This document shows, one piece after another, positions 21,901-54,395 of a stretch of DNA of 64,000 nt. A model generated the notes under the pieces. It was given only the letters and a program-made list of their open reading frames with translations. It ran no database searches and was not told the DNA's origin. Both the position numbers and the translations under genes were made by a program. This DNA is from Macrostomum hystrix (lineage: Eukaryota > Animalia > Platyhelminthes), in NCBI GenBank assembly GCA_950097015.1, contig CATNEN010000030.1, positions 496,001-560,000 of the forward strand. The letters run 5' to 3'. How positions within the stretch are numbered: the stretch's first letter is position 1; each line of letters starts with the position of its first letter.

Positions 21901-24900
21901 AAAATTCATGAACCAGGGACTTCAAGATCTAGAAAATTCATGAACCAGGGACTTCAAGATCTAGAAAATTCATGAACCAGGGACTTCAAGATCTAGAAAA
22001 TTCATGAACCAGGGACTTCAAGATCTAGAAAATTCATGAACCAGGGACTTAAAGATCTAGAAAATTTATGCACTAGCGACTTCATGATCTAGAAAATTCA
22101 TGAACCGGGGACTTCAAGATCTAGAAAATTTATGCACTAGCGACTTCATGATCTAGAAAATTCATGAACCAGGGACTTTAAGATCTAGAAAATTCATGAA
22201 CCAGGGACTTTAAGATCTAGAAAATTCATGAACTAGCGACTTCAAGATCTAGAAAATTCATGAACCAGGGACTTCAAGATCTAGAAAATTCATGAACCAG
22301 GGACTTCAAGATCTAGAAAATTCATGAACCAGGGACTTCAAGATCTAGAAAATTCATGAACCAGCGACTTCAAGATCTAGAAAATTCATGAACCAGGGAC
22401 TTCAAGATCTAGAAAATTCATGAACCAGGGACTTTAAGATCTAAAAAATTCATGAACCAGGGACTTCAATATCTAGAAAATTTATGCACTAGCGACTTCA
22501 TGATCTAGAAAATTCATGAACCAGGGACTTTAAGATCTAGAAAATTCATGAACCAGGGACTTTAAGATCTAGAAAATTCATGAACTAGCGACTTCAAGAT
22601 CTAGAAAATTCATGAACTAGCGACTTCAAGATCATGAACCATGCATTCATAAAATCATCTGTTTTTTTGCTCTACCTGTCTTATGAGTTGGTTTAAAGTG
22701 TCTCACAATTAACCTTCCTTTCTGTCATTTCGCTGACTCATGCCGCCTAGATTTCTAATGTTTTTACTGCCTCAAAATAAAACAAAAATGTGTTGGGCCT
22801 TGCAAAAAATAACTATAGGCTTTGTGTTTGTGTGTGTGAAGGGGAGTGATGATTGCGCTGTGTGTTGAGAACGGAGGCGGGTGAGATGGCTTGAGTCTGC
22901 AGTCTCTCTATTACGCAATCAACTTTCTCGATGAAGAAGGGAGAGGCGAGGCTGGATGAGCAATGGGAATCCTATAACTTCTCTCTTTCCTGGCGTGAAA
23001 ACTTGTCCATCTCTAGCCCACTCTTTCTGTGGGCCTTCACTTACGTAATTCCCTGCTTGTGCTCAGACTGTCCCGCTGTCTGCTAATGCATAATGCAAGC
23101 ATCTTCCGCTAAGGTCTTTAACTAATTCTGTAGGGAAAAATATCGACCGGAAACTTTGCTCGTTTGTCTGCGTCCCGCTGCTTAACTTCTTCTGCTTTAA
23201 ATTTAAGCCTTTTTAGTTTAGAAATAACTTGCGGTCGAAATAAGGAAGTAAGATTGATAGATATTCATTTTGTGCGGTCCACGATCAATTCCTTGATTAA
23301 CGGGCCCTTGCTTCTTCCCCTTAGCCCATAGATTTGTCTTTTGATTTGATTGCGTCGCGTTAAATTGAGGCAAGAATAGCAAATTTTAACGCACTCGTAT
23401 TATGCTGCTATCGATTATGCTTCCTATTTAGGGTTTCTTCAGGCGAACCATCCAGAAGAGCCTGCAGTATCATTGCAAATGGAACGGCGGCTGCCGAATC
23501 GATAAGACCACGCGCAACCAGTGCCAGCAGTGTCGCTTCGCCAAGTGCCTGTCCGTTGGCATGGCAGCCGACTGTGAGTACTAGAAGCTTGATTTGTTAT
23601 CTGATTAGCTAGATGACAATCTCTGATACTTCAGTATACTATCCCAGATCCTCAGGTAAACTATCCCAGATCCTCAGGTAAAATATCTAAGATCCTCAAG
23701 TTTAGCCCTCCTAGATCTTTAGCTCCCAAGATCCCCAGTTTGAAAGCTCAGAAGTCCCTCAGGCTCCCAGATTATTTTCTGAATGAGGCCACGATTATCC
23801 AGTTTGGTGAGGCCATGCATGCTGAATCCCGCCCTGCAACTCCAGTGGTGCTTAACGAGAAGCAGCGAGTGGCCAAGCGCAAGCTGATCGAAGAGAACCG
23901 GCTCCGTCGGTCGGCTGACGTGAAACGCCTACGCGAGGACGACGATCTGGACGACTCCGGTGTCAGCGCCAGCGTCGTCGGCGTCACCGATCACGCCAGT
24001 AGCGCCGTTGGTAGCGGCAGCGGTAGCGGCATCGTTGACCGAGAAGACGGCTTCGATCAAGAGGTCATGCCGGAGGAGGAGCGCGCAACCATCAACTTGG
24101 TGTCTGCCGCCTACCAGCAAGCTTGGCTTTCGGCTGGAGTGACCGCTGCAAATGTGAGAATTCGCGTCTTTTGTGCCGGTTCGGGTCCAATGTACCGGAT
24201 GTGTCTGATGTACTGGATGTGTCTGATGTACTGGATGTGTCTGATGTACTGGATGTGTCTGATGTACCGGATGTGTCTGATGTACTGGATGTGTCTGATG
24301 TACCGGATGTGTCTGATGTACCGGATGTGTCTGATGTACTGGATGTGTCTGATGTACCGGATGTGTCTGATGTACCGGATGTGTCTGATGTACTGGATGT
24401 GTCTGATGTACTGGATGTGTAGCTTATGTACTGGAAGTATCTATTTTGTACTGGAAGTGTATCTAATGTAACGAATGTGGCTAATGTACTGGAAGTGTAT
24501 CTTATGTACTCGAAGTGTATCTTATGTACTGGAGGTGTATCTAATGTACCGAATGTGTCTAATGTACTGGAAGTGTATCTTATGTACTGGAAGTGTATCC
24601 TATGAACAGTGTATCTAATTTTTTTCACCAGAAGCCGACGGCGTCGGATTTCTCAGAGGCAGCCGAGGCGGAGCATCCAGGCGGAGCCGGCAGCAGCGGC
24701 GGCAGCGTCCTGGACAGCCTCACCCAGCTGATGTCGCGCGCCGTCTCTTGCGTCATCAAATTCGCCAGGGGCATTCCAGGCTTCGCTCAGGTGAGAACAC
24801 GCGAGACGAGTGCTTGATTCACTACTTTTAGTAGGTAGGTTTTGGGAAAAGTAAAAGGAAGAGACATTTCTTGGCGTGTAAGCACCCGCTCTGAGAATCA

Positions 24901-26871
24901 GTGGCGGGAGGGTAAGCACCCGCTCTGAGAATCAATGGCTGGAGGATAAGCACCCGCTCTGAGAATCAATGGCGGGAGGGTAAGCACCCGCTCTGAGAAT
25001 CAATGGCGGGAGGGTAAGCACCCGCTCTGAGAATCAATGGCTGGAGGGTAAGCACCCGCTCTGAGGTCGCCAGCTTTTGAATAAAATGATGAACATGGTG
25101 ATTGTGTTCCAGCTGAACGAAGACGACCAGTTTCTGCTGCTGAAAAGCAGCTGCATGGAGATCCTCTGCCTCCGGGTGGCCTGTCGATACGATAAGCAGA
25201 CAGAATCGCTCTCGCTGTCCAATGGCAGTGTGGTTACCAAGGCGACGGTTCGCGTCGGTCGCCTTGGCGAATTCGTCGAGCCGCTGTTCGAATTCGCCAT
25301 CGGCCTGAGCCGCCTGGACTTGGATCAGTGCGAGGTGGCCCTGCTGGCTGGCGTGCTGCTGATGCAGAGCGACCGCATGGGACTCCGTCAACCAGACCGC
25401 ATCGAGGCCGTCCAGGACGCCATTCTGGTGGCCTTCAAGCGATACGTCACCGAGCGGCGGCGAAGGAGAGGCGTCGACTGGGCCAAGATTCTCATGAAGG
25501 TTCGAACTCAGACGAGTAGAATAGGGGGCGTAGGGCAGTGATTCGACTCGATTTTGGTGATCGAATAGTGCTGGGGTTTAGTTAGAATCGATTGGGTTTA
25601 GTTAGAATCGATTGGGTTTAGTTAGAATCGATTGGGTTTAGTTTAAAATCGATTGGGTTTATTTTAAAATCGATGGGGTTTAGTTTAGAATCGATTGGGT
25701 TTAGTTTATAATAGATTGGGTTTATTTTAAAATCGATTGGGTTTTGTTTAGAATCGATGTGGTTTAGTTTATAATCGATTGGGTTTAGTTTAGAATCGAT
25801 TGGGTTTAGTTTAGAATCGATTGGGTTTAGTTTAGAATCGATTGGGCTTAGTTTAGAATCGATTGGGTTTAGTTTAGAATCGATTGGGTTTAGTTTAGAA
25901 TCGATTGGGCTTAGTTTAGAATCGATTGGGTTTAGTTTAGAATCGATTGGGCTTAGTTTAGAATCGATTGTGCTTAGTCTAGAATCGATTGTGCTTAGTT
26001 TAGAATCGATTGGGTTTAGTTTAGAATCGATTGGGTTTAGTTTAGAATCGATTGGGTTTAGTTTAGAATCGATTGGGTTTAGTTTAGAATCGATGGGGTT
26101 TAGTTTATAATCGATGGGGTTTAGTTTAGAATCGATGGGGTTTAGTTTAGAATCGATTGGGTTTAGTTTAGAATCGATTGGGTTTAGTTTAGAATCGATG
26201 GGGTTTAGTTTAGAATCGATTGGGTTTAGTTTAGAATCGATGGGGTTTAGTTTAGAATCGATGGGGTTTAGTTTATAATCGATGGGGTTTAGTTTAGAAT
26301 CGATTGGGCTTAGTTTAGAATCGATTGGGTTTAGTTTAGAACCGATTGGGTTTAGTTTAGAATCGATGGGGTTTAGTTTATAATCGATTGGGTTTAGTTT
26401 AGAATCGATGGGGTTTAGTTTTTAATAGATTGGGTTTATTTTAAAATCGATGGGGTTTAGTTTAGAATCGATTGTGCTTAGTCTAGAATCGATTGGGCTT
26501 AGTCTAGAATCGATTGTGCTTAGTTTAGAATCGATTGGGTTTAGTTTAGAATCGATTGGGTTTAGTTTAGAATCGATAGGGTTTTGTTTAGAATCGATTG
26601 GGTTTTGTTTAGAATCGATAGGGTTTTGTTTAGAATCGATTGGGTGTTTTTCAATCCAAGCTAAGTCATCCTCTCCTATCACCCAATGCAGGTGACAGAC
26701 CTGCGCAGTATTGTAACCAGGCAGGGTGACAATGTGCTCACTGCCAGATTCGACACCGCTGGTGGCAACGAGGTGCCCCTGCTGTTCATGAACATCTTCT
26801 GCGACTCGGAGTCCCAGGCTGTGACGCCTCATTCAACAATTGCCAAGTGTGAGCCAATGGAACCACAGTAG
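15919..26871 (+). CDS. THR: Thyroid hormone receptor (NR1A), ~559 aa; exons 15919-16306, 20137-20252, 23432-23573, 23846-24153, 24632-24790, 25113-25499, 26692-26871
   Basis: All junctions are GT-AG and in phase (1680 nt). DBD region YIPSYMD...[31 protein letters not shown]...[22 protein letters not shown] plus [19 protein letters not shown] is diagnostic of TR. LBD motifs: [55 protein letters not shown]. The start codon is less certain than the rest. Confidence 0.95.
16358..17656. repeat. Intronic minisatellite, 16-bp unit GGATAACTGTCCCATC
   Basis: Tandem periodicity in TR intron 1. Confidence 0.97.
17668..18196. repeat. Intronic minisatellite, 16-bp unit CAATATCTATCCCATC
   Basis: Tandem periodicity, abutting the previous 16-mer array. 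Confidence 0.96.
20312..22640. repeat. Intronic minisatellite, 32-bp unit TCTAGAAAATTCATGAACCAGGGACTTCAAGA
   Basis: Period 32 (e.g. TTCATGAA at 20401 and 20433). Lies in TR intron 2. Confidence 0.97.
24190..24610. repeat. Intronic minisatellite, 18-bp unit GATGTGTCTGATGTACTG
   Basis: Fills TR intron 4 (24154-24631). Confidence 0.95.
24878..25064. repeat. Intronic minisatellite, 34-bp unit GTAAGCACCCGCTCTGAGAATCAATGGCGGGAGG (~5.5 copies)
   Basis: Units start at about 24878, 24912, 24946, 24980, 25014 and 25048 in TR intron 5. Confidence 0.93.
25578..26648. repeat. Intronic minisatellite, 21-bp unit GATTGGGTTTAGTTTAGAATC
   Basis: Fills TR intron 6. Confidence 0.96.
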
Positions 26872-27905: not shown

Positions 27906-29134
27906 GTGGCTCTCGAGCTGCTGCTCGGGTGATAGTGTTGCGGTTCTCTCACAATTCCGCAACACCTGATTTGCAATAGATTATACATCTAGCATCACAT
28001 ATGTATCCCATGACCAGTTTGTTTTTGTTTTTACTTTTGCTACAACAAATTGCGCTCATTTATTCTATGTTCATACACACAACACACAAGCTCGCCTATA
28101 TCTGATTGATTTGATCGCGCTGCCAACTCGGCTTCTCTGACACACCTGTTAAACCTGTTATTGGCTAATTAAATAGCTAATTATAGCACAAACATATATG
28201 TTGATGATTTCAAAACAATTAATTGTCTTTACTATTTTGCTTGCTTTTTTTAACTCACCCAACAGCACAATTGTTTTTTTAGTTGTTTGTCGAATTTAGA
28301 AAGCTTTCTATTATTGATTTGTTGCTTTTGTAATCTTTAAACAGCGGACGCACACAATGATTGCTTTCTGTTCAGGTGTCCAGGACATGCCGTTTTTTGC
28401 ACAGTTGTATTAGCTTTGTTTATGCATAAGTGATGTACTTTTATGCACGCATTCGCAATCCTTTACCTTAGTTTGTACTGGCTAGCAGGCTGTGTTTGAT
28501 CAGTTTGACAGTGTAGTCATGACCTACGGTAATCATCAGTAAGCTTTCCTTTTGTTCGGTGTCACAGTTGCGGACTGGGAGGTCATTGACTCCCAGTGAC
28601 CTCCCCCGAATCTGCAGTTTTTCTTTGTTTTCAATAGCTAGTGTACATTCTTACTAATGATTTGTTTAACTAAACCGATTTTTTTGGCGCTGATCTGTCT
28701 CTGCTGACTCAGCCCTGAGAATGCTCAGGATTTTGTTTGTTACCGCACACCTATAGCCGCTGTTTTATGCTTATTTCCGCACAAGGCTAGAAATAGCTGA
28801 CGAGAATCGTTTTTATGCCCCTACTATGCTCCTACTATTAGTAGTGCAACACAAAAAGCGATCTGTCCGCTCCGGGTATTGACCAGACCTGTCGGCTCTT
28901 TCACTCAGAGGAAAATTGAAGCCTGGAACACATTTTTTCAATATTATATCATATATTTCGTGACATCTGATATTGTGCCGCTTATCATAATACACAAGCA
29001 AGTGAACATCAACCGGTTCTATAATCTGTTCAAGGCTTTGGTCTTCGTTTATTGCTTTGTTAATCGCTGCAAATCGATAAATTTATTCCCCAAATTCACT
29101 TCGATTTTTTCTAAAAAAACCTTCTCAGGCTATT

Positions 29135-29878
29135 CCCCAGAATCCCTATCACAATGTTCCCAAAATCCTTTAAGAGCTGTCCCAGAATCCTCTCAGAGTT
29201 CTACCAAAATCCTCTCAGAGTGCTCCCAGAATCCTCTCAGAGTTCTACCAAAATCCTCTCAGAGTGCTCTCAAAATCCTCTCAGAGTGCTCCCAATCCTC
29301 TCAGAGTGTTCCCAAAATCCTCTCAGAGTGCTCCCAAAATCCTCTCAGGGTGCTCCCAAAATCCTCTCAGAGTGCTCTCAAAATCCTCTCAGAGTGCTCC
29401 CAAAATCCTCTCAGGGTGCTCCCAAAATCCTCTCAGAGTGCTCTCAAAATCCTCTCAGAGTGCTCCCAATCCTCTCAGAGTGCTCCCAATCCTCTCAGAG
29501 TGCTCCCAAAATCCTCTCAGAGTGTTCCCAAAATCCTCTCAGAGTGCTCCCAATCCTCTCAGGGTGCTCTCAAAATCCTCTCAGAGTGCTCCCAAAATCC
29601 TCTCAGGGTGCTCCCAATCCTCTCAGAGTGCTCCCAAAATCCTCTCAGAGTGCTCCTGAAATCCACTCAGATTGTTCCATCAAATCTTCTCAGAGTGTTT
29701 CTCAAATCCTCTCAGGGTGCTCCCAATCCTCTCAGAGTGCTCCCAATCCTCTCAGAGTGCTCCCAAAATCCTCTCAGAGTGCTCCCAAAATCCTCTCAGA
29801 GTGCTCCTGAAATCCTCTCAGAGTGTTCCGTCAAATCTTCTCAGAGTGTTTCTCAAATCCTCTCAGGGTGTTCCTTAA
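29135..29878. repeat. Minisatellite, 20-22-bp unit CCTCTCAGAGTGCTCCCAAAAT
   Basis: Direct periodicity. Confidence 0.94.
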
Positions 29879-30364
29879 ATCCATATTATATTTTGTTCCC
29901 AAATTTTCATTGAACATTAAATGAATGATAGATAAAGGCATGAAATTTGTAGAAATTTAGAATTGCGGATGCGGTCAGACACGCGCATTGTTAATAAGCA
30001 TTTGTGGGCACTGCGGTCGTTCATTCACCTGCACAGTAAGCTATTAGCTGTTCTAGAAAGGATGCTGAAATAAAATAATAAAACATGATGTCTCACAATG
30101 GGTAGCTCTGTGCCCTGCTCACTCGTAGTATCATGGTTTGAGTCACTGCTCATTGAGTTGGAGTACTAACCGTGCTACTTCTATTTAGCTTTATAATGTA
30201 CAAGCCAGTGTAAAAATAGCTTCAGTGGACTTGGAATTGTTGACAATTTATTCCGAGCAAGCAAAGCAGGGACATAAATAGGTGCCTTTTTAGTCGAGTC
30301 CATAACTAAAAATTTCCAGCGAAATTGCCAAAGTTTGTTTATTCCGAGTCCATCTCAACTGAAC

Positions 30365-33300
30365 ATGAGTTTTTATCGATATTTTTGCTCTAGCCTCGCA
30401 ATCTCATTGTTCTTAATTGGTAAGCTTGTGTTCTACTTTCTCTTGTTTATGCATATCGTCAATTCAAGGTGTCTCGATCTTCAAAAACTTCCACAAAGTT
30501 GCTTTCATGTTCATTCATCTGCTTTGCCTAAACCAAGAAAAGTTGATAACCGTTGATTATATCGCGTCTTTTATAGAAAAATCAACGATAATCTAAATTC
30601 AGTTAATTGTCGTTGACATTTTTCGGACAAAAAATTCTACCATAGATTTTGCCTACTGGAAGTAATTAGTATAACTAGCATCTCAACATTGTATTATTTC
30701 AAACACATTTGACGCAGTAGCCAGCAGCTACAGCGGTGCAGCCGCAGCGGCCTGGAGTTACCGGTGGCGCAGCCTGAACGAATCCGGTGCCCTGGGCTGC
30801 ACAGGCAAAGTACAGACGGTCGACCTGGCTGAGCACTTTCGGGAAGCGCTCGTTGACATTTTCGTCTACCAGGCAACCGGAGGTAAATTTAACTCCGGAC
30901 ACCACGAATAAGGAGCTGTAGTCTGCATAGCTTCAATCACAATGAAACCCAGGCCCAGTAGAATGACTTATATTTATAAACTGTACTACTTGCAGACATT
31001 GCGAATAGCTCGGACCCACCGGAGGCTTGCGGTCTGTATCAGAATGTACTGGACTATGTATCCAGAAATTTGGGCACCAACGCTGGTAGGTGAAAGTTTT
31101 TGCCGCGTCAGCTAGAAGAAATGGAGAAACAGAGAGAAACATTGACATAGGGACAGGGACACAGACTCAGAGACACAGAGACACAGGGACTCAGGGACAC
31201 AGAGACACAGGGACAAGGGGACACAGGGACACAAGGACACAGGGACACAGGGACTCAGAGACACAGGGACACAGGGACACAGGGACACAGGGACACAGGG
31301 ACACAGGGACACAGGGACTCAGGCACTCAGGGACACAGGGACACAGGGACCCTGAGACACAAGAACTCAGAGACGCAGGGACTCAGACACAGGGACAAGG
31401 AGACGCAGAAACAGGGACCCTGAGACACAGGGACACAGGGACTCAGGCACTCAGGGACACAGGGACACAGGGACCCTGAGACGCAGGGACTCAGACACAG
31501 GGACACAGGGACACAGGGACACAGGGACACAGGGACACAGGGACACAGGGACACAGGGACACAGGGACACAGGGACACATGGACACAGGGACACAAGGAC
31601 ACAGGGACACAGGGACTCAGAGACACAGGGACACAGGGACACAGGGACACAGGGACACAGGGACTCAGGCACTCAGGGACACAGGGACACAGGGACCCTG
31701 AGACACAAGAACTCAGAGACGCAGGGACTCAGACACTGGGACAAGGAGACGCAGAAACAGGGACCCTGAGACACAGGGACACAGGGACTCAGGCACTCAG
31801 GGACACAGGGACACAGGGACCCTGAGACGCAGGGACTCAGACACAGGGACACAGGGACACAGGGACACAGGGACACAGGGACACAGGGACACAGGGACAC
31901 AGGGACACAGGGACACAGGGACACAGGGACACAGGGACACAGGGACACAGAGACTCGGGGACACAGGGACACAAGGACACGTCGGACACAGACAGACTAG
32001 AGCAGTGACAAAAGCATAGACCCACCAACATTGCAGTCTGCCTTCAGCCTCACAGCACAGCCGAGCTGCTCACCATCCAGCAGTACCTGAAGCTCCTGCA
32101 GCCAGCTGTCAGTTCCACGCGCCCAGTCGCGGTGTCCGCGGTTCTGGCTGCTGCCGACTATAGAGACAAATCAGGCGCCTTGCTCAGAGGCTTCTTCGAC
32201 AGCCTGTCGGATCCGGTACTCACTGCTGGGCCCTCTGAGTCTGAGCTCGCATCGGTGAGCTCGGGTTCACGACTGATTACGGCGTGGGCTAAGCTTAATA
32301 GGATCCTAGATGATAGATTAAATGATCCTAGTTACAGGACACTGTTAGATCATAGTCCTAAACTAACTTTGCCCGCAGGCAACCTACCAGTACCTCGCCG
32401 AACTCGACTGGAGCTACGTCGGCCTGCTGTGGGAGGCGGAGCCGGGCTCAGCCCGACTGTCACAGAAGCTGCTGTCGCTGGGGCGCACCGACCGCAGGAT
32501 CTGCTTCCCGCTGCTGCTGAGCTTCAACAGCGGGAACGCAACGGACGCTGTCCGGGCGCTGAAGGACTTTGTGTACTCCAGCAAACGGCTGCCCCGCTTC
32601 ACTGTCGTCTTCGCTGGCTCCGGCGCAGCCTTCCTGCGCCTGTGGGACCTCGTGTCAGGAGGCGACAGCGCCTTCGCTGACTCAGAGAAGCGCTACCAGC
32701 TCGTGCTGGTTGGCGACGCCTTCAGCAGCTTCCACCGGATGTCCGACATGACCAGGCGAAAGAACCTCGGCCTCGGCACCGTCTTCATCTTCCCGGGAAT
32801 TCTGGACCCGGAACCCGCCACCGATGAGCTGGGGACGCTGTTCGCCAACCTCACTGCCGATGCGGCTTCCATGGGCCGGTTCTCCGAGCTGAAGGCCACC
32901 CACGGCCGGCTGAACTGGCTCAAGCAGTCGACCAGCAGCCAGTGCCTCTGGTCCGATTCCAGTAGCCTCTGCTACCTGCTGGCCCTCCGCTGCGACTTCC
33001 AAGCCCTCAGCCTCGCCCCGCTTCTGGCCGACGGAGTCCCGAGCCTCGGCTCGCTCGCCGACGTGCAAAGCCTGCGGCAGAAGACGGTCACTCTGGCATC
33101 ACTGAGGACAAAGTTCACATTGCTGAACTCCTTTGTCAGGGCCGGCTTCACCACCTACTCCATGGACAGGGGCCTGCAGCACACCTCCCGCGGCTTCTGG
33201 CAGCCCATCGTGAAGATCTACCAGAGCCAGCTGCGCGGGACCAGCTACTCGCTGGAGAAGCTCGGCGAGCTGGCCCTCAAGCAGGCGGGAACGGCAGCGC

Positions 33301-36300
33301 AGACGTATGAGTTCAATGCGACTGGCGTGAGCAAATTCTACCAGCTGACCAGCGGCAACCCCGACATCTTCCCGACCCTGACGAGCAGCTTCGCGTCAGA
33401 GTGCCCCGCCAGCTGTCCAGAATGTGTGAGCGACTCGGATAAGCAGTTCATTCAGTTCAAGGAGGGCGACATCTACCTGGGCGCTCTGGTGCCCGTCTAC
33501 TATAGAGGAGTTGACTTGTTCGACTGCAGCGATGGCGCCTTCAGGAAGAAGTCCGTTGGCGGCTACGAGTTCGCGATGGCGTTCAAGTTCGTTGTCGAGA
33601 TGGTGGACGCACTCAGCCAGGGAAATCCAATGCCGAAGGGCTTCAACACATCGCAGGTCGATCAGCAGTTCCTTATAGGAGTGAGAGACTTGCTTCAGAG
33701 AGTTCACGACAGGCGCACCAAGAGGCTGCGCTGGGGCTACGTTGTGCTGGACACCTGCTACTCACCCAGCTGCACCGTGCGGCGACTCGGCAGCCTGCTG
33801 GACGGCAGTCTGGCGGTCGTGCCAGGCTTCAACTTCACCAAGGTGGTTGGCTTCGTTGGAGCGCATTCCAGCACCCAGACGATGGCCTCCAGCCAGCTGC
33901 TGAAGATGTACAACCTCCCTCTGATAAGCTATGGCTCAACTTCCACAGCACTAAGTGACGTCAACCAGTATCCGTTCGTTCTGCGTACTTTGTCATCAGA
34001 CACCGCGATCATTGAAGGCATGGTGCGGATGCTAAAGTACCTCAAAGTGGATTACTTCAGCGTAGTGTACGCCTCGTCAGCGTACGGCGTGTCATTGAAG
34101 GAGGAGATGGTGCGAATTTCATCTAGAGAGGGCCTGTGCATCTCGAAGCTGATTGTCTTTGATTGCGGCGGTGTGGACGACAGCTGCAAGCGAAGCTTGA
34201 TGCTGGACCTCAAGTCTCTCAGGGCGCAATACGTGACCTTCCTCAGCAACCTGCCGGACCTCATCTCGCTGCTGAATTATCCGCAGGCCGAGACAGACAT
34301 CGGCTACCTGACACTGTTGACCACCGAGTCTGTCGGCATCTCGGATGCTGCCTTCGTCGATAAGAAGAATGTCGGTCTGGGCACGCTCAGCCTGCAGCTG
34401 GCCTCTTCTCCGACGCCAGCCTTTTCGGGGTTCGTCAATTACAGCCTGACCCGCATGCCGCCGAACCCCAATAACATCTCCCAGTGGGACCGGCTGTTCT
34501 TTGAAGACGCTCAGCAGTGCTACCTTCCCGGAAGTTTCCAGAGAAATATGGCTTTCTCTCAGGCCTGCCAACAATCGCTAGTTCAGGTACTTGAAAATGT
34601 TTGAAGGGCTTCTTTAACAGTAGAACTACCAATTGGAGGGGGAATTCCCCGACCCTGACAACTACTTTTGCTGCAGCCGAATGAAACAACTCAAGCACAC
34701 GAAAGTTTATAAACGGGCCAACTTCTTCTGAAACAATAATCAAGTCGCCAGCTCATCAGACCGCCGAGATATTCAATGGTTCTGGCTGAAAGTCAGATTT
34801 TTCTCGTAAGGGCTAATGTATTTCATACACCCCTATACACAAATTTGCACTGCGCCTCAGTGCGGCCTTGCCAGGCCTTCAAAATTTATGAGCATGTCAC
34901 CCGAATGTGCCTGCATAATTGCTCTCTTCACCTTCATGGGCTACAACAGGTGTAAATAGGTCACTATGGACACCCTGACGCGAATTTCTACAATTTCACT
35001 GATCAAGCCTAAATACTAGGCGCAGCTCAACCCCAGGACACCCTCGCCTAGTCTGTCAACCAATCAGTCACCACCTAGCGCTGTTAGCATTCGAGCGCTG
35101 CCAAAAATATTTTCAAGGGGGGGGAGAAATTCTCATACCCCTTGGTATAAAAACGGGCGGCAAAATGGCTTTGTAGTCCTACTGTTAACCTTTGCTTTCG
35201 CAAACACTCGCACTACGAGATAGCTAAACCTTGGAAATTCGCAGGCGCATCCAATTACTGAAGTGGAATCCCGCGCACCTTTCGTCATCGATGCCACCTC
35301 CACCCTGGTGCTCGGCAGCCTGACCGCAATGACCTACCTGTGCCAGGTGACCACACCGGAACCGGCCTGCCCAGGCTATTTTCCAGGCGACTTCCAGGGC
35401 ATGCTACAGCGGGCCAACTTAGTTATGTACGGCAGCGTTGGCAGCAACGACCCCCGTCCGCAGACGTTTAGTGGCAACTTCGATGGCTCCGCCTGGTCAT
35501 TCCGGAAAGTGTTCGACAACCGCATGGGGCAGACGCCATTCTCAATCTGGCAGTACCGGAAGCGGGGCTCCGGTGACTACCGTTTTGTTCAGGTAAGACT
35601 GACACCATTAGTGCGTCACGTTGAGAAAATGACACCAAAGGTGCTGCCCTCATCATCCACACAGCTGTTATTTAAATATGAGCTTTAGCTGGGCATCAAA
35701 AGGGATGCTGCGACTTACAACCAGGGCTTTAACCACTTTAATCCATTTGCGTTGCAAACAGCGACCCACAGCAGACAACTAAAAGGGATGCTTATTGCGA
35801 TAACCAAATTAAAAATGGTTTAGCAACGGTGAAATCGGATTTCCAACTTTGACAGATCGGCCTGTTTGATGGCGCCAACTCGTTGAGCGTCACCGAAACG
35901 CCAGCCCAGCTTGAGTCCGCCGAGAGAACCTCGGGCTCAACTGGCGACTCGTCGTGCCGAACTCGGGCCCAGTGCGGCATTACGGACACCTCGCGATGCG
36001 CGAATCCCAGCGTGGGATCGAGGGCCACATCGACTGATGGCGACAGCGGCGGAGTCGACAATGGATCCAATCTGGGTTTCCTGGCACTGCTCATTATTCC
36101 AGGCTTCCTGCTCGGCTTCTTGCCAATCTGCGTGTATAATATCTGTCGGATCAGGCTGTTAGAGTCTGACGAGGAAGCACCTGAGGAGTCTATCAACACT
36201 GGCGTCGCCAATCAAAGCTTCCAGTCGACGGGTAACAGCCAGTTTGGTGGCGGAGGAAGAATAGCTTCAGATGGTTACGACCGAATGAGCGGCATCTCTA

Positions 36301-36398
36301 CAGCGCAAACTTGGCAGCAACAGCAGCAGCAACAGCAGCAGCAGCAGCAGGCTCTGTGGCATGCCGACGGAAATGAAATGGCTGAAAACGTCGGTTAA
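30365..36398 (+). CDS. Type I single-pass membrane protein with two tandem class-C-GPCR-like Venus flytrap (ANF_receptor) domains, ~1178 aa; exons 30365-30419, 30718-30882, 32037-32254, 32379-34586, 35245-35592, 35856-36398
   Basis: Six phase-consistent GT-AG exons (3537 nt). Signal-peptide-like start MSFYRYFCSSLAISLFLIVASS. VFT1 is degenerate (YLAELDWSYVGLLW, RICF). VFT2 is clearly mGluR-like (GDIYLGALVPV, VLDTC, VVGFVGAHSS, PLISYGSTS, LSDVNQYPFVLRT, SSAYG, EGLCI). One hydrophobic segment LGFLALLIIPGFLLGFLPICVYNIC (~36072-36146) is followed by RIR and a short tail. Confidence 0.85.
31148..31990. repeat. Intronic minisatellite, 9-bp unit GGGACACAG, with an internal ~345-bp block duplication
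   Basis: Lies in intron 30883-32036. The block at ~31310-31650 recurs at ~31656-31950. Confidence 0.95.
34618..35184. mobile_element. TTAA-type MITE, copy 2 (intact TIRs, TTAA on both sides), in intron 4 of the flytrap gene
   Basis: TTAA(34614-17)|CAGTAGAACTAC ... GTAGTCCTACTG|TTAA(35185-88). Confidence 0.88.
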
Positions 36399-36609
36399 CA
36401 ACAGTTGCTGCTGCCTATTGCTGAACTATCTGCAGACAATACGAGTATTCGGTTTCAGAGACACTACTTCATGTGTCAATATTTACTGTAGCCTGATATT
36501 AATCTACTTGATTATAGGCTTGAATAGTGCTATTTTAGCATCTTTCATTAGCTTCCTGCACACAACTATCATTTATTCTCCATATACTTTTGTAACTCGA
36601 CGACAATAT

Positions 36610-36921
36610 TGTTATGTAGTGACTTGCAGCCAGCGCGTATACGCTGAGTACACCGCGCTGGCAGCTGTCTGTTAACTGGCTGAATATCATTTCATTGTGC
36701 GGTGCAGCCATGTGCAGCCAGCGCGCGTACGCTGAGTACACCGCGCTGGCAGCCGTTTGGTTAACTGGCTGACTTTCAAATCATTGTTCGCTCTATTTTA
36801 TCACCCCCTAATCCTTACACCCAACGTGCCGTCGCATAAAATATATATCGCTGTTCTCAGGAGCGTGGAGCTCTGACTGTTTACGTTTCGTTCTAAATAC
36901 CACCAGTCTAGAGTTATTTCA
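36610..36921 (+). repeat. 5' LTR
   Basis: TGTTATG...TTATTTCA, matching 40989-41300. Contains an internal ~60-bp direct repeat and a TATA-like ATAAAATATATAT. Confidence 0.96.
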
Positions 36922-36932
36922 GTGGCGACGAG
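36922..36932 (+). other. Primer-binding site TGGCGACGAG, complementary to the 3' end of tRNA-Ser(GCU)-type tRNAs
   Basis: Directly follows the 5' LTR. 10-nt complement of ...CUCGUCGCCA. Confidence 0.8.
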
Positions 36933-36946
36933 ACTTGGGCCCAGCC

Positions 36947-39900
36947 ATGCCGGCCCACGGAATCGGAGAATTTGAAGACTCCGTCGAAACCTGGGATGAA
37001 TACCAGGAGCGCCTGGAGCAGCATTTTCTCGCCCAGGACATCACTGACGAGGGCAAGAAGAGAGCAACCCTGCTGAGTGTCTGTGGAAGGAAGACGTTTC
37101 AATTGGCTAGAAGCCTGTGCTCTCCAGCCAAAGTTGCTGGCAAATCGTACGACGACATCTGTTCGCTGCTGAGCGGTCATTTCAACCCGAGACCAAGTGA
37201 GATCGTCCAAAGGTTCCACTTTAACAACCGAGCCCAGCGTGCTGGAGAGACTGTGGCAGAGTTTCTGGCAGAGCTGCGGAAGCTGGCCGAGTTCTGCAAC
37301 TTTGGCAACAGCTTGTCGGACATGCTGCGGGACAGACTGGTGTGCGGCATCGCGGATCAGCAAATCCAACGCCGGCTGCTGATGGAGCCGACCCTCACCC
37401 TCGACACAGCAAAGGAGATCGCTCGGGCGGGCGAATCGGCAGCCATCAACTGCCGGTCGCTGGGATCAGCGAACTCGGCAGCACCGACGCCATCGACGGA
37501 AAGCGACGCTGTGCTACGGATGGAGCGGCAGCGACCAGAGGAAGACAGCAGACAGCTGGGAGCCGAAAGTCGTCGGCGCTGCTTTCGCTGTCTCTCAACC
37601 CGTCACCTGGCCAGCAAGTGCCCCTTCGTGGACAAGCGCTGCTTTAAGTGCAGCAAGACCGGACACACAGCGAAGGCCTGTAAGACAGATGCACTGCGGC
37701 AGCAGCAGACACACCAGCTGGTGGAGCAGGTGACCACGAGCGCGAGTCCAGATGAGGTGTCGTATCCGTTTTATCATCTGGGGGCGGATCGGCCGCAGTC
37801 AAGTTTTCCACCGATCAGGACATCGGTTTTTATCGAAGGGCGGCAGCACGAGATGGAGGTAGACACAGGTGCATCTGTATCGCTGATGTCTGAGCGCACA
37901 TTCAAGGCGAACCTGGACGGACTGGTTACACTGTCCCGGTCAACGATTCAACTCAGCACCTACACCGGTCAGACCGTGCGCGTGCTCGGCCAGCTGTCCG
38001 TCCGCGTGCGAGTGTCCGCCGACTCTGATGAAGCGCAACTGCGGCTTCTCGTTGTCGCCGGCGACGGTCCGAGCCTCCTCGGTCGGGATTGGCTGGCTCA
38101 GCTGCGCCTGGACTGGCAGTCGGTCAAGCGCATCGGTGACCCTGCTGAGAAGCTCATCAAGGAGTTCTCAGATGTCTTCCAAGGCCTGGGAGAGTTCAAC
38201 GGCAAGCCAGTGTCTATCAGTCTCAAGGAGACCGCCAGACCGAAGTTCTTGAAGGCGCGACCTGTTCCTTTCGCGCTGCGTGAAAAAGTCGAACAGCAGC
38301 TGCAGAAGGAAATCGACCAAGGAGTGCTGATGCCGGTCAAGAACTCCGACTGGGCGTCACCGATCGTGCCAGTGATGAAATCGGACGGCAGCGTCCGCGT
38401 CTGTGCAGATTTCAAGCAGGGAGTCAACACAGCGATTCGGCCGGAGGCGTACCCCCTGCCAAACATCGACGAACTGTTCGCCCGGCTGACTGGCGGGCAA
38501 AAGTTCTCTAAGCTGGACCTGACCAACGCATTTATGCAGCTTCCGCTGGACGAGGAAGCCCAAGAGGTCTGTACAATCAACACTTCCGTCGGACTCCTGC
38601 GCTACACCCGACTGCCTTTTGGGGTGTCGATTGCCCCAAGCGTCTTCCAACGAGTGATGGACAACCTGCTGCGTGGAATTCCGCACACAGCATCCTTCAT
38701 CGATGATGTCATCATCACGGGAGAGGACGACGCGAGCCATCTGCACAATCTCAGAGAGGTCCTGAGGGTCTTCAAGGAATCCGGCCTGACCTGCAAGCTC
38801 GAGAAGTGCAGATTCTTCCAGGACGAGGTCACGTACCTGGGTCACCGCATCGACGCAGAGGGACTGCACCCACTCGACGACAAAGTCCAAGCCGTGCTAG
38901 ATGCACCAGCACCGACGAACACGACTCAGCTCAGGAGCTTCTTGGGCCTCATCAACTATTACGGGAAGTTCCTGCCGAATCTCTCCAGCGTGCTGGCACC
39001 GCTACACCGGCTGCTGGAGAAAAACTCGAAGTGGCGGTGGGACCGCGGTGAGGCCAAAGCGTTTGCCGCAGCAAAGCAGCTACTCACGCATCCAAGTGTC
39101 CTGGTGCACTACAATGCGGCAGAGGACCTCTACCTGGAGTGCGACGCCTCGCAGTACGGCCTGGGCGCTGTCATCTTCCATCGTCAGAACGGCATGGACA
39201 AACCGATCGCGTACGCTTCGCGCAGTCTCAGTGCCGCTGAGAAGAACTACTGTCAGCTGGAGAAGGAGGCACTCGCGCTGGTCTTTGGCGTCAGAAAATT
39301 CCACCAGTATCTGTTTGGCCGAGAGTTCAACCTGCTGACGGACCATCGGCCGCTGTTAGGCCTCCTTGGGCAGGAACGGCCGCTTCCAACGTTGGCGTCC
39401 GGCCGAGTTCAACGATGGGCGCTGCTCCTGACAGCCTATCGCTACCGTCTAGTACATCGCAGCGGGACCTCTATGCTCCGGGCGGACGCCCTGAGCCGCC
39501 TTCCTGCATCAAGCGGGCCCAAGGACGTTCCAGTGCCACCGGAAGTCATTCAAGTGATGGACTGCCTCGACGCCGGTCCGGTGACTTCATCAGATGTGCG
39601 TAACTGGTCACGCCGCGATGCCACATTGTCTCAGGTAATTCGTTTCTGTCTCTCTGCCTGGCCGGACAAGGGATCCCTGTCCCCTGACCTCACGCCCTTC
39701 GGCAAACGCCTACAGGAGCTCTCGGTCCAAGACGGCTGCATTCTTTGGGGCTGCCGCGTCGTCATTCCGGAGGCCTGTCGATCCAGTCTCCTAGAATCGC
39801 TGCACGTCGCACACCCTGGCGCGTCCCGCATGAAGTCGCTGGCCAGGAGCTACATCTGGTGGCCCGGCATGGACCGTGATATCGAGGCGAAGGCAGCGGG

Positions 39901-40998
39901 ATGCCAGGAGTGCCAGAAGCACCAGCGAGTCGGTCCGGAGGTGCCACTGCAACCGTGGCCGCTGCCGACAAGGCCCTGGTCGCGGATTCACATCGACTTC
40001 GCAGGGCCCGTCCAAGGAAGAATGCTCCTGGTGGTAGTCGACTCCTACTCCAAGTGGATCGACGTTCACGTGACGTCGGCAACGACAAGCTCTGCAACGA
40101 TAGAGAAGCTACGACAGACCTTCAGTGCCACGGCCTGCCGGATGCTATTGTCTCGGACAACGGTCCCTGCTTCGCAAGCTCGGAGTTCGAAACCTTCTGT
40201 GCTAAGAACGGCATTCGGCACATCCGCACGCCGCCCTACCACCCAGCTTCGAATGGCCAAGCCGAACGAACTGTGCAGACCGTCAAGAGCTCTCTGAAAA
40301 AACAAGCGAGCGACGGCAGCTCTCTGGAGACGCAGCTGGCGAGATTCTTGCTGAGTTACCGCACAACGCCGCACCCAACGACAGGAGTGGCTCCTTGTGA
40401 GCTACTGATGCGCCGTTCGCTGCGAACGCTCCTCGATGTACCCAGGCCAGACATTGCCAAGCGGGTCCTCGAGAACCAGGAGAAGCAAAGGCTGCAGCAT
40501 GACTCTGGGGCGCACGGGCGGAGCTTCGCGGAGGGCGAGGCAGTGTTCGTTCAAGACTTCAGATGTGGAAAGGAACGGAGCTGGACGCGAGCAACGGTGG
40601 TGGGCATTGAAGGCAGCAACTGGTACCAGTGCAACCTGCCGGACAACAGAACGGTTCGGCGCCATGCAAACCAGATGCGGTGCGATACGACTCACCGCAA
40701 TGTGGACCAACAGCCTCGGGGGCTGGTCTGTCAGCCGCCACAACTGCCACCGCCCCTACCACTGGCACCGCCGCCATCGTCGACACCGACAACGCCGCCG
40801 CCGCCGCCGCCGCCGCCCCCACCGCCGCCGCCGCCGACATCACTACATCAGCCACCGCCAACGCCTCCAACGCCTCCAACAATGGCACCGCAGCAGCAGC
40901 AGCGGCGGGATCAATCACCGCAGCACGTGCCTCGAAGATCGACCAGGATCCGCAAGAGCCCAGACCGTCTGAACTATGGTGGGAGAAGTGTTATGTAG
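36947..40998 (+). CDS. Gag-Pol polyprotein (Gag, 2x CCHC, protease, RT, RNase H, integrase) with a 1-nt deletion frameshift at ~40126-40127
   Basis: Motifs: CFRCLSTRHLASKC and CFKCSKTGHTAKAC; VDTGAS; RLPFGV..AP..FQ; FIDD; CDASQYGLGAV; TDHRPL; LHVAHPG..CQEC; HIDFAGP. Integrase continues in the 39901-40998 frame (HGLPDAIVSDNGP...SNGQAER). The stop codon lies inside the 3' LTR. Confidence 0.93.
40978..40988 (+). other. Polypurine tract GGTGGGAGAAG
   Basis: Immediately upstream of the 3' LTR. Confidence 0.75.
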
Positions 40999-41300
40999 TG
41001 ACTTGCAGCCAGCGCGTATACGCTGAGTACACCGCGCTGGCAGCTGTCTGTTAACTGGCTGAATATCATTTCATTGTGCGGTGCAGCCATGTGCAGCCAG
41101 CGCGCGTACGCTGAGTACACCGCGCTGGCAGCCGTTTGGTTAACTGGCTGACTTTCAAATCATTGTTCGCTCTATTTTATCACCCCCTAATCCTTACACC
41201 CAACGTGCCGTCGCATAAAATATATATCGCTGTTCTCAGGAGCGTGGAGCTCTGACTGTTTACGTTTCGTTCTAAATACCACCAGTCTAGAGTTATTTCA
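40989..41300 (+). repeat. 3' LTR
   Basis: Matches 36610-36921. Confidence 0.96.
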
Positions 41301-52700: not shown

Positions 52701-54395
52701 TCATCCAACCAGTGAATCCAGTACTCACCCTGCCAGTGAATCTAGTACTCACTCAACCAGTGAATCCAGTACTCACTCAACCAGTGAATCCAGTACTCAC
52801 TCAACCAACGAATCCAGTACTCACTCAACCAGTGAATCCAGTACTCACCCAACCAGTGAATCCAGTACTCACCCAACCAGTGAATTCAGTACTCACCCAA
52901 CCAGTGAATCCAGTACTCACTCAACCAGAGAATCCAGTACTCACTCAACCAGTGAATCCAGTACTCACATATCCAGTGAATCCAGTACTCACTCAACCAA
53001 TGAATCCAGTACTCACATATCCAGTGAATCCAGTACTCACTCAACCAGTGAATCCAGTACTCACATATCCAGTGAATCCAGTACTCACTCAACCAGTGAA
53101 TCCAGTACTCACATATCCAGTGAATCCAGTACTCCCTCAACCAGTGAATCCAGTACTCACATATCCAGTGGATCCAGTACTCACTCAACCAGTGAATCCA
53201 GTACTCACTCAACCAGTGAATCACCTCACTCAATCTACTTCCCTGCCGCGCCCCAGGGCCTATTCCGGCTAAACGGACCCAGTGGGTCGGTGCTGAAGCT
53301 GGAGTCCTTCCTAGATGTGATGCGCGCCGACTTTGAAATCAGCCGCTTTGATAGCGCCTCAGTCTGCGGCGCCCTGAAGAAGTACTTGAAGCAACTGCCG
53401 GAGCCACTGGTTAGTCAGGCCTTACTCCCAGCCTGGGCGGAGGCTTGCAACACAGTCGAAGCTGATACTCGCAGATTTCGCATGCACGACTGCTGCCAGC
53501 GACTTCAACGCGAGCGGCCCATTCCTGTACGCCAATCTGCGACATCTCGTCAAGTTTCTAGTTCGAGTGGCCCAGCATCAGGATCGCAACAAGATGTCGG
53601 CTAAGAATTTGGCCATCTGCATTGGTCCAAACATTGCTGCTGGCGGCGGCAACGGCGCCAACATGGAAGAACTTCAATCGGCTAATCTAGGGACGCTTAT
53701 TATGGAAAATCTGCTTCTGATGCACGACTTCTGCTTTGGCGAAGAAGGTAGGATTTTTAATATTAATTGCGCGCTGTCTGGGATGTTATCATTTTGCATA
53801 TAAGTCTAAGTACTCAAGCACTGTATATTATATTTCTCGCAGTCAAAACGATTTTTGCCGATGGCCTTTTCGTTAACCGCGCAGCTCTAGACTCGAATTC
53901 TATTTATTGAACTTCTCGAATTTCTAGGCGGAGTAAGCCTAGTACGAGCTAATAGTATAGTAGTGCTACATTCATTTACAATTCTTTTACGCTCGTATTC
54001 TAACAAACTTTTTTCCCACTCCATTCCCTTATCCCTTCGAATCCGCCAAATTGTCATTGCCTGACAATGCCCCCACACACACAAACACACAAAATGCTGA
54101 CTACAGTTGTCACTGGGAACAGTTTGCAATCCCCCCGAACCGAAGCTGCTCACCTGCACCAGGCTATGCAGAAGCGTCGCGAGTCGCTGCTCAGTCAGCC
54201 TGACTCAGACTGCGCCGCAGCGCCAGTCGCCGCCTCCGCCTCTTCATCATCGTCGTCATCGTCTGCTCTGACGTCGGCTAAAAGTTTTCACGCCGACGTC
54301 TACGATACGGCGTTTGTGCTGCAAAGCCTTCGTGGCGGGGTTGGGGGAGGTGTCGGCGGTGGCATGTCTGCCAGTTTAAATTATGACAATGACCA

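Follow-up and report, generated by a model that had tools for sequence, protein, structure and literature searches.

The locus considered here lies in a 64,000-nucleotide stretch of Macrostomum hystrix DNA, which was analysed as a whole (the window), and it appears to encode a protein with two Venus flytraps (VFT1 and VFT2) and a single transmembrane (TM) helix. The question that it raises is whether such a protein is complete or is instead a class C GPCR that has lost its 7TM bundle, and, if it is complete, what it might do.

Gene structure and transcripts

The gene occupies positions 30365-36398 of the forward strand and encodes a product of approximately 1208 amino acids in a coding sequence of 3627 nt (Table 1). 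The first-pass annotation had described six exons; we count seven, which begin in phases 0, 1, 1, 1, 0, 0 and 0, in that order, and are separated by GT-AG introns throughout. The individual elements that it had listed all lie where it had placed them.

The first-pass annotation had also called for a check against RNA, and this check finds exons 3-4 and exons 5-6-7 joined and the stop codon covered by separate contigs. RNA contigs from runs X2, X3 and X4, which come from two studies, omit positions 34587-35244 and 35593-35855 and thereby join exons 5, 6 and 7, and the same two introns are covered by DNA run X1. A 520-nt contig of RNA run X2 continues for 214 nt upstream of exon 4, a continuation that exon 3 and a portion of exon 2 would account for. 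In RNA run X3, a loose end at position 32036 corresponds to the end of exon 3, so the exon 3-4 junction is seen in RNA. The separate contigs at the 3' end (RNA runs X3 and X4 and DNA run X1) span 36359-36639 and include both the stop codon and the 3' UTR. The exon 1-2 junction and cleavage of the signal peptide are predictions, and a leader resembling that of exon 1 is also present in the M. lignano ortholog, P0001. Identity to M. lignano is 69% for exon 2 (tblastn against locus L012), 78% for exon 5 (against P0001) and 83% for exon 6 (against L012).

Downstream of the gene lie a young LTR retrotransposon, which begins at 36610 and thus 212 nt beyond the stop codon, and a RhoGAP gene. No 7tm_3 exon was found on the contig within 1.4 Mb of the two-flytrap gene, the nearest being 1.4 Mb away, and a scan of the window's 10 larger open reading frames likewise detected none. 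Given this distance and a stop codon inside exon 7, we agree with the original observation that no 7TM exons precede the next genes.

Table 1. Features of the two-flytrap gene, in window coordinates.
Feature	Position	Strand	Description
Exon 1	30365-30419	+	Start codon and hydrophobic, signal-peptide-like N-terminus MSFYRYFCSSLAISLFLI; based on sequence and a GT donor
Exon 2	30718-30882	+	Start of the N-module (AAWSYRWRSLNES...); AG/GT sites, phase 1
Exon 3	30996-31085	+	AG/GT sites
Exon 4	32037-32254	+	X2 RNA contig exactly on 32036-32253, with flanks unlike introns; conserved in L012
Exon 5	32379-34586	+	736 codons, open frame; rest of the N-module, SECPASCPEC, VFT2 lobe 1 and most of lobe 2
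Exon 6	35245-35592	+	C-terminal part of VFT2; spliced contigs in X2, X3 and X4
Exon 7	35856-36398	+	Stalk with three Cys, TM helix, 83-aa tail and TAA stop; spliced contigs cover 35853-36310
Stop codon (TAA)	36396-36398	+	Within exon 7, after the TM helix
3' UTR	36399-36609	+	Contigs at 36359-36636/36639; ends at the edge of the young LTR element
N-module (putative VFT1)	30718-33395	+	Spread over exons 2-5
Mini Cys motif 1	33396-33425	+	SECPASCPEC; after the N-module, within exon 5
VFT2	33447-35592	+	Class-C type; S-T-D-Y-E amino-acid-binding signature intact
Mini Cys motif 2	35955-35999	+	C-x5-C-x7-C; after VFT2, in the exon 7 stalk
TM helix	36072-36146	+	Single hydrophobic segment (Kyte-Doolittle); contains GxxxG
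Shared tract	32407-33940	+	95.6% nucleotide identity with the upstream paralog (blastn); read as gene conversion

Two flytraps and a single-pass anchor

Searches were run exon by exon, with P0001 and P0002 of M. lignano, both full length, taking the place of the complete product. The order of domains is a signal peptide, an N-terminal module (N-module), a three-cysteine motif, VFT2, a second three-cysteine motif, the TM helix and a tail. The GxxxG motif of the TM helix is invariant in an alignment of five Macrostomum sequences. The 83-aa tail, which includes NQSF, YDRM (36276-36287) and a polyQ run, is short, of low complexity, poorly conserved and fast-evolving, and it contains no Pfam domain, catalytic or docking. 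Pfam detected no kinase domain in exon 7, P0001 or P0002, and the stalks, with three cysteines only, gave no match to NCD3G in these same sequences at E-values up to 1. The first description of the protein, as having two flytraps, mini cysteine motifs, one TM helix and no cysteine-rich (CRD), 7TM or catalytic domain, is correct.

VFT2 opens with the motif GDIYLGALVPV and is matched by Pfam ANF_receptor over exon 5 residues 449-686 with an E-value of 5e-28. Its best PDB matches are mGluR1/5 (E-values of 3e-20 to 8e-25), and these closest solved relatives bear out its earlier characterization as mGluR-like. VFT2 retains S165, T188, D208 and Y236, has glutamate at the D318 position, as CaSR does, and conserves the lobe-2 cysteine of the 'GxCI' motif. 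All five alpha-amino-acid-contact residues (S, T, D, Y and E) are present in VFT2 of this gene, of its M. lignano ortholog and of a third paralog. Since in mGluR and CaSR the alpha-amino-acid group is held by these five residues, VFT2 would most likely close around an extracellular amino acid or a small molecule resembling one. Residue R78 of mGluR1, which holds the distal carboxylate of glutamate, is apparently not conserved; the HMMER alignments placed neither it nor K409.

The N-module alone gives nothing significant with Pfam, its profile finds no match among PDB sequences, and its hhalign comparison with the alignment of the same gene's VFT2 is not significant (E-value of 0.16). Compared with a VFT1 profile of two-flytrap proteins, it is matched by hhalign with a probability of 96.3% (E-value of 1.6e-9, 164 colinear columns). 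This profile was built from 30 proteins, namely 29 mollusc and Lingula relatives and one fish CaSR-like model that was excluded afterwards. Atlas features for the N-module give ANF_receptor at 0.94, and the sole Pfam trace is a 13.5-bit ANF_receptor match at the colinear position in the N-module of the third paralog. An AF2 model made from five sequences was unusable (pLDDT of 38.7). The AF2 model that we used is confident for residues 141-250 alone (approximately 110 residues), and its best Foldseek matches are mGluR5/1, T1R and the NMDA-receptor ATD; because the AF2 alignment contained true VFT1s, this fold match and the hhalign comparison are not independent lines of evidence. As judged by profile comparison and predicted fold, the N-module is a decayed first flytrap. 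The amino-acid-binding residues are gone from the Macrostomum VFT1.

Conservation in Macrostomum and across Spiralia

M. lignano possesses a syntenic ortholog (locus L012, protein P0001) with the same exons, and the comparison with M. lignano yields a dN/dS of 0.15 overall, 0.15 for exon 5, 0.24 for the N-module, 0.08-0.12 for VFT2, 0.09 for exon 6 and 0.37 for exon 7. The decayed VFT1 is still under selection, and its role is probably structural or regulatory. The M. hystrix genome also holds two paralogs of the same build, one of which lies 139 kb upstream of the window and 172 kb upstream of the gene and has P0002 as its M. lignano counterpart. The ortholog and both M. hystrix paralogs likewise end after one TM helix, and no 7TM gene adjoins either of the M. 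lignano genes. A literature search with the M. lignano gene ids found no paper.

These observations bear on whether the locus might be a class C GPCR in decay or wrongly modelled, either a pseudogene without its 7TM domain or a gene with 7TM exons that were overlooked or split off by the LTR insertion. The proximity of the young LTR retrotransposon to the stop codon and the failure of Pfam to detect the N-module would suit such a history. However, the stop codon sits inside exon 7 after the TM helix and is covered by contigs of RNA runs, the same ending occurs in the ortholog, the two paralogs and distant phyla, dN/dS is 0.15, and the 7tm_3 scan found no such exon within 1.4 Mb. On these grounds we rejected both the pseudogene and the missing-exon versions, and we consider a decayed or mis-modelled GPCR extremely improbable. 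The two-flytrap gene is real, spliced, expressed and under selection.

The paralogs differ in their binding residues and tails. In the upstream paralog, three contacts out of five are substituted (D>T, Y>F and E>Q), identically in both species and with a dN/dS of 0.08, and its tail carries a YxxP motif (YDEP in M. hystrix, YDVP in M. lignano P0002). The M. hystrix sequence of this paralog shows an extra T that may not be real. The third paralog resembles the window gene in keeping all five VFT2 contacts and in having lost YxxP. For P0152, the M. lignano ortholog of this third paralog, the annotation adds a repeat-rich extension at the N-terminus. The 1.5-kb tract that the window gene shares with the upstream paralog spans the bulk of the N-module and the initial portion of VFT2, and RNA contigs have matching loose ends at 32407 and 33865. 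The same tract in M. lignano is 94% identical between paralogs versus 79% between species. The tract has been kept 94-96% identical between the paralogs independently in two species.

This identity, taken with the split of contacts and YxxP between the two paralogs, is what leads us to consider an obligate heterodimer. By analogy with the GABA-B receptor, one subunit would bind ligand, a phosphotyrosine docking site would sit on the other, and gene conversion would keep the shared assembly surface of the two paralogs matched. We regard this division of labor as unlikely.

A search of proteomes, which the first-pass annotation had proposed, finds the same architecture in molluscs and Lingula. 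Uncharacterized proteins of molluscs and brachiopods, in at least 29 clusters, have two Pfam ANF_receptor domains and one TM helix, and the named members, from molluscs and Lingula, are annotated as 'uncharacterized' (for example, Lingula XP_013382567.1, Haliotis XP_048248200.1 and Saccostrea XP_062604070.1). Three cysteines are found in the linker between VFT2 and the TM helix in 27 of the 30 non-Macrostomum members listed, and a cysteine motif follows VFT1 in all four family members that were read full length. No match to 7tm_3 or NCD3G was found among the eight spiralian members scanned. A juxtamembrane YxxP motif is enriched in the family, though not universal, occurring in 17 of 29 tails versus a mean of 4 after shuffling; the tail of the window protein lacks it and has YDRM instead.

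A quick maximum-likelihood tree places VFT1 in a separate clade with support of 100, and places the Macrostomum VFT2 inside the family VFT2 group, on a long branch and with moderate support (SH-aLRT of 82-87). VFT1 and VFT2 thus appear to be separate old clades across phyla, which speaks against a recent origin of the duplicated mGluR ectodomains suggested earlier. The M. hystrix protein belongs to an uncharacterized spiralian family that includes a flatworm, molluscs and a brachiopod. The architecture had also been proposed to be undescribed. That still stands to the extent that our literature search found no paper describing a two-flytrap, single-pass metazoan family, but the protein is not a one-off, given the M. 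lignano counterpart, the two paralogs and the mollusc and Lingula proteins. Word-index searches matched only two M. lignano proteins and, with the family alignment, only Lingula and one 7TM protein; with so few matches, these searches are uninformative about taxonomic range. Giant matches of 2-4 kaa with 5-10 flytrap matches each (Polypterus 'CASR' and Sinanodonta) were set aside as probable merged tandem-array models.

Related receptors and probable function

Among known receptors, group I mGluR1/5 and CaSR most clearly resemble VFT2, sharing its class-C type, the GDIYLGALVPV opening, S165/T188/D208/Y236 and the 'GxCI' lobe-2 cysteine. Class C GPCRs (mGluR, CaSR and T1R) nonetheless have the nine-cysteine NCD3G domain and 7tm_3, both of which the M. 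hystrix protein lacks, whereas the latter has an extra upstream flytrap, three cysteines only, one TM helix and an 83-aa tail. NPR-C, which is dimeric, is similar in that its ANF_receptor flytrap is followed by one TM helix and by a short tail of no catalytic function. It differs in having one flytrap and in binding peptides, whereas the M. hystrix protein has two, with cysteine mini-stalks and an mGluR-related VFT2. The natriuretic peptide/guanylyl cyclase receptors contain kinase-homology and cyclase domains, neither of which Pfam finds in the M. hystrix tail.

The Venus kinase receptors (VKRs) of schistosomes, insects and other invertebrates, which occur in flatworms and are reported to be activated by amino acids (PMC2680970, PMC4038586), also join a flytrap ectodomain to a single TM helix. 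A VKR, however, couples a lone flytrap to a tyrosine kinase domain of insulin-receptor type, whereas the M. hystrix protein has two flytraps and, by Pfam, no kinase. SmGBP, a truncated Schistosoma mansoni mGluR of 488 aa, is a membrane-associated, dimerizing glutamate-binding protein and, like the M. hystrix protein, provides a flatworm mGluR-type flytrap free of CRD and 7TM; by its described architecture, it differs in having one flytrap and no C-terminal TM helix (PMC3206071). Two tandem flytraps external to the membrane, and then one TM helix, are also found in bacterial BvgS/EvgS and in trypanosome receptor adenylate cyclases (PMC4352136, PMC6027212), but in those proteins the output domain is a kinase or a cyclase and the flytraps belong to other PBP classes; the likeness may be one of arrangement only.

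With a probability of roughly 0.55, we favor the reading that this constrained gene encodes a type I membrane protein that serves as a subunit of a dimeric cell-surface sensor for amino-acid-type ligands. The protein would function in dimeric form, like the flytraps of class C receptors and NPRs. The invariant lobe-2 cysteine of each flytrap may be disulfide-bonded to that flytrap's own three-cysteine stalk, by analogy with the VFT-CRD link of mGluR. Closure of the flytrap could then shift the TM helices that bear the invariant GxxxG motif, and the signal would pass to a partner subunit or membrane protein and not through the protein's own poorly conserved tail.

A less probable, though plausible, reading is that the protein binds an amino-acid-like ligand without signalling, as a surface decoy, buffer, clearance receptor or uptake receptor comparable to NPR-C or SmGBP. 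The absence of YxxP and the fast-evolving tail fit this possibility equally well: the short tail has low complexity and little conservation (dN/dS of 0.37), no catalytic or docking domain was found, and flatworms already own a truncated membrane-associated glutamate-binding flytrap protein (PMC3206071). On the other hand, the invariant GxxxG and the conserved three-cysteine stalk suggest that coupling across the membrane matters, YxxP is enriched in the tails of the family, and selection has kept VFT1, which a simple binder would not need.

It is quite improbable that the flytraps instead bind another protein, trans-cellular or of the matrix, in an adhesion or organizer role. The large two-module ectodomain, a VFT1 that has lost its small-molecule-binding residues and yet remains constrained, and the annotated extension of P0152 could all be accommodated by such a role. 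Pure protein binding, however, offers no reason for the five VFT2 contacts to be kept in the gene, its ortholog and the third paralog. The first-pass annotation had suggested a co-receptor, decoy, uptake or adhesion protein; the intact VFT2 signature, together with purifying selection, favors a ligand-binding receptor subunit over a purely adhesive protein.

Flytraps are known to be coupled to the 7TM bundles of class C GPCRs, to ion channels, to cyclases and to tyrosine kinases. Here, the same sensor leads into one helix with a short tail, and its two-flytrap format is conserved in flatworms, molluscs and brachiopods alike. Macrostomum has established methods for RNAi and transgenesis. With one flytrap decayed, one intact and a paralog with a mutated pocket, the roles of the modules and of the dimer partners are directly testable. 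If amino-acid sensing proves true, this family would represent an unexplored route by which a large share of animals senses nutrients or transmitters.

Gene model and transcript of the focal gene

The focal gene comprises seven exons, all bordered by GT-AG and in consistent phase, and its coding sequence totals 3627 nt (1208 codons plus TAA). The first-pass annotation had counted six exons, which does not stand; the rest of its description of the sequence was accurate. Public runs were mapped over 31990-36900 only, leaving out the intron 3 microsatellite. Contigs of approximately 1587 nt from the RNA runs X2, X3 and X4 (two studies) map to 33836-34583, 35242-35589 and 35853-36310, thereby reading the exon 5-6-7 junctions, and the introns are covered by the DNA run X1. 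Contigs of X1 and of X3 and X4 also cover 36359-36639, from the stop codon into the 3'UTR, and no joint leaving exon 7 occurs among the contigs mapped over this interval. The RNA check that the first-pass annotation had proposed for the true last exon thus confirms that the transcript ends in exon 7, as it had been placed.

Features of the focal gene and its surroundings (N-module, the N-terminal module before SECPASCPEC; VFT2, second Venus flytrap)
Feature	Position	Strand	Remarks
TMF1-like exon	5009-5830		TMF_DNA_bd
Nuclear hormone receptor gene	24632-26871		upstream; syntenic with M. lignano
Minisatellite	28879-29913		just upstream of focal gene; SECSQNPLRVLPKSSQSAPKIL-type repeats in all three plus frames
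Focal gene	30365-36398	+	seven exons
Exon 1	30365-30419	+	hydrophobic leader
Exon 2	30718-30882	+	GT-AG
Exon 3	30996-31085	+	GT-AG; end read by RNA loose end at 32036
Intron 3 repeat	31140-31985		~850 nt micro-/minisatellite of GGGACACA-like units
Exon 4	32037-32254	+	exactly spanned by one X2 contig
Exon 5	32379-34586	+	Pfam ANF_receptor at residues 449-686 (5e-28)
Tract shared with upstream paralog	32407-33940
SECPASCPEC motif	33396-33425	+	between N-module and VFT2
Intron 5 repeat	34639-35189		very high-copy, interspersed
Exon 6	35245-35592	+	spliced RNA contigs
Exon 7	35856-36398	+	C-x5-C-x7-C motif, hydrophobic segment, tail, stop
Hydrophobic segment	36072-36146		exon 7; sole strongly hydrophobic segment of the protein
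LTR retrotransposon	36610-41288		LTRs 36610-36909 and 40989-41288; frames 36935-40297 and 39901-40998
RhoGAP-domain gene	51817-53604		downstream

The surroundings are rich in repeats. The intron 3 repeat contains long spurious open reading frames in all frames on both strands. The intron 5 repeat has a summed word depth above 200,000 in the DNA run, and copies of 77-78% identity adjoin both paralogs. The LTR element begins 212 nt past the focal stop codon, either in the 3'UTR or at its end; its two 300-nt LTRs are 100% identical, and it encodes gag, protease, RT, RNaseH and integrase in two overlapping frames.

The claim of the first-pass annotation that no 7TM follows was borne out. Of the 107 exons matching the Pfam domain 7tm_3 in a six-frame scan of the 220-Mb genome, none on the same contig lies within 1.4 Mb of the focal gene, and downstream of it lie the LTR element and the RhoGAP gene. 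The reading of the gene as a class C GPCR with a missed 7TM is contradicted. The focal product is a type I membrane protein, expressed and under constraint, that consists of a decayed flytrap, an intact class-C-type flytrap and one TM helix, without an effector domain.

Macrostomum relatives, selection and a shared tract

A word-index search returned two full-length M. lignano proteins with the focal layout and without 7TM, P0001 (1195 aa, 78% identity) and P0002 (1182 aa, 68%). In the searches the focal gene entered as unjoined exons, with P0001 and P0002 representing the complete protein. P0001 is the syntenic ortholog, as a nuclear-receptor gene precedes both genes and the exon pattern matches. 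The P0002 gene lies ~180 kb from the P0001 gene on one M. lignano contig, and its M. hystrix ortholog lies 172 kb upstream of the focal gene on the opposite strand. A third M. hystrix paralog, with 48% identity, is found on another contig, C38. The last exon of both M. hystrix paralogs encodes 3-5 Cys, one TM helix, a ~75-aa tail and a stop.

Measured against the M. lignano ortholog, with a high dS that makes the values approximate, dN/dS is 0.15 for exon 5 overall, 0.24 for the N-module, 0.08-0.12 for VFT2, 0.09 for exon 6 and 0.37 for exon 7. These values rule out the reading of the focal gene as a pseudogene.

Three irregularities were observed among the relatives. In the assembly, the upstream paralog carries an extra T (locus L002, reverse complement, ~2937; G000:C30 near 354,540), reading CTGGCTGGTC against CTGGCGGTC in the focal gene; this T, which may be allelic or a mistake of the assembly, shifts the reading frame close to where the converted tract ends. 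In P0152 (PAA66742.1, 1499 aa), which is the C38 paralog's ortholog in M. lignano, the annotation places an additional N-terminal Pro/Thr-rich stretch and repeated ~90-aa Cys-containing modules before the N-module; these may be real or stem from a merged gene model. Some 4-5 kb downstream of the C38 paralog, short fragments resembling family genes at 37-62% identity (G000:C38:27613293-27613517 and nearby; L006/L008 ~5044-5503) are probably a decayed partial copy.

The focal gene shares with the upstream paralog (C30 ~354.4-355.95 kb, minus strand) a tract of 95.6% nucleotide identity, whose flanks are unalignable by blastn; RNA contigs of the upstream paralog diverge from the focal gene at 32407 and 33865. 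The equivalent tract in M. lignano (L012/L011) spans 1556 nt with 94% identity between the two genes. Between species, the identity is only ~79%, and the tract borders match in the two species. The tract takes in the greater part of the N-module and the beginning of VFT2, ending just before the first ligand-contact motif. Judged from these alignments, it is a product of concerted evolution by gene conversion, with like borders in two species.

The wider family and the N-terminal module

The first-pass annotation had proposed searching lophotrochozoan proteomes for the same architecture, and it is present there. An exhaustive HMMER search with P0001 returned many further proteins of 950-1490 aa, matching best at residues 520-1000; all eight that were scanned with Pfam contain two ANF_receptor domains, and 7tm_3 and NCD3G, the cysteine-rich domain (CRD), are absent from these eight. 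With a home-made flytrap HMM and hydropathy, at least 29 clusters share a flytrap at ~25-480, a second at ~520-960 and one TM at ~1000-1060. Among the 30 non-Macrostomum members listed, 27 have three Cys in the linker before the TM, and an inter-flytrap C-x(3-6)-C-x2-C motif aligns directly with SECPASCPEC. Named members come from gastropods (Haliotis, Bulinus, Patella, Batillaria, Nucella, Babylonia), bivalves (Saccostrea, Solemya, Mytilus, Dreissena, Potamilus, Mya) and the brachiopod Lingula. Their annotation is "uncharacterized" or "hypothetical" in nearly all cases; one Mya protein is called "GRM7-like". The literature searched, outside which most subscription journals lie, yielded no account of such a two-flytrap single-pass family in metazoans. 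A conserved "mGluR3-like" amphioxus protein, P0069 (Branchiostoma floridae XP_035696128.1, 1307 aa), has two flytraps followed by a 7TM; these flytraps group together, suggesting that the tandem duplication arose independently there.

Pfam did not detect a flytrap in the N-module, its profile comparison with the focal gene's own VFT2 was not significant, and an AF2 model from 5 sequences yielded no usable fold. Against a profile of first flytraps (VFT1) built from 30 domains (29 family members and one fish CaSR-like model, excluded later), hhalign aligned N-module residues 138-307 with VFT1 147-313 over 164 colinear columns (probability 96.3%, E 1.6e-9); against the VFT2 profile, E was 4e-4. 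An AF2 model from a 34-sequence alignment reached pLDDT 80-92 at residues 141-250, an alternating strand-helix lobe whose best Foldseek matches are the mGluR5, mGluR1, T1R and NMDA-receptor amino-terminal domains; because the true VFT1s in that alignment shape the model, the fold match is not independent of the hhalign result. Language-model features place the N-module with ANF_receptor clusters at 0.94, as a lead only. We conclude, in line with the earlier reading of a "degenerate flytrap", that the N-module is a decayed first flytrap, directly for its central lobe and by colinearity for the remainder.

Ligand site, stalk, tail and possible mode of action

Pocket residues were compared at the five positions that hold the alpha-amino-acid group (S165, T188, D208, Y236 and D318) through a HMMER alignment to mGluR1 (1EWK), where adding 32 to the chain index yields receptor numbering, as the GPGSSS motif confirmed. 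The VFT2s of the focal gene, P0001 and the third paralog have S, T, D, Y and E, the E being as in CaSR. P0002 and its M. hystrix ortholog have S, T, T, F and Q, and the P0002-type VFT2 is still tightly constrained (dN/dS 0.08). Most mollusc and Lingula members keep all five residues in both flytraps, and the Macrostomum N-module has lost all five, by an alignment that is uncertain in its first half. R78 of mGluR1, which binds the distal carboxylate of glutamate, aligns without confidence and seems unconserved, so the ligand may be other than glutamate.

The lobe-2 Cys of a G-x-C-I/F motif is invariant in each flytrap (C189 in alignment A4, C231 in A5). In mGluRs this Cys is reportedly bonded to the CRD and required for activation. 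Together with the three-Cys mini motif it makes four Cys, which would fit one intra-stalk and one flytrap-to-stalk disulfide. A GxxxG is invariant across the five Macrostomum TM helices, and the tails diverge. Within the 83-aa focal tail lie NQSF, YDRM and a polyQ run. In the wider family a Y-x-x-P next to the membrane is frequent (e.g. PDYITP, DPYLNP, QIYLTP): 17 of the 29 tails have it, where 2000 shuffles averaged 4.05 and never exceeded 11; relatedness inflates this figure. At this motif P0002 has YDVP, the upstream paralog YDEP and the focal gene YDRM. The conversion tract and the complementary losses, of the pocket in one paralog and of YxxP in the other, suggest that the two might divide labour in a heterodimer as GABA-B subunits do, though this is improbable.

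In the mechanism we propose, VFT2 would bind an amino-acid-like ligand, the protein would be dimeric, its closure would be relayed to the TM helices by way of the disulfide-linked mini-stalk, and output would come through a partner rather than the protein's own tail. The strongest competing reading is a protein that binds or clears its ligand without signalling, like NPR-C or SmGBP. NPR-C shares the short tail, but its flytrap is single and NPR-type; SmGBP is a truncated flatworm mGluR with one flytrap and without a C-terminal TM (PMC3206071), whereas the focal protein has two flytraps and a C-terminal TM. An adhesion protein is less likely, as the pocket is intact. Of the other systems closest to our proposed receptor, mGluR and CaSR share the flytrap but have the CRD and 7TM that it lacks, VKRs share a flytrap and one TM but add a kinase, and bacterial and trypanosome sensors share tandem flytraps but have catalytic outputs. 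What the analysis adds is the range of the family over molluscs and Lingula, the identification of the N-module as VFT1, the ligand-site contrast between paralogs, the tail motif and the conversion tract.
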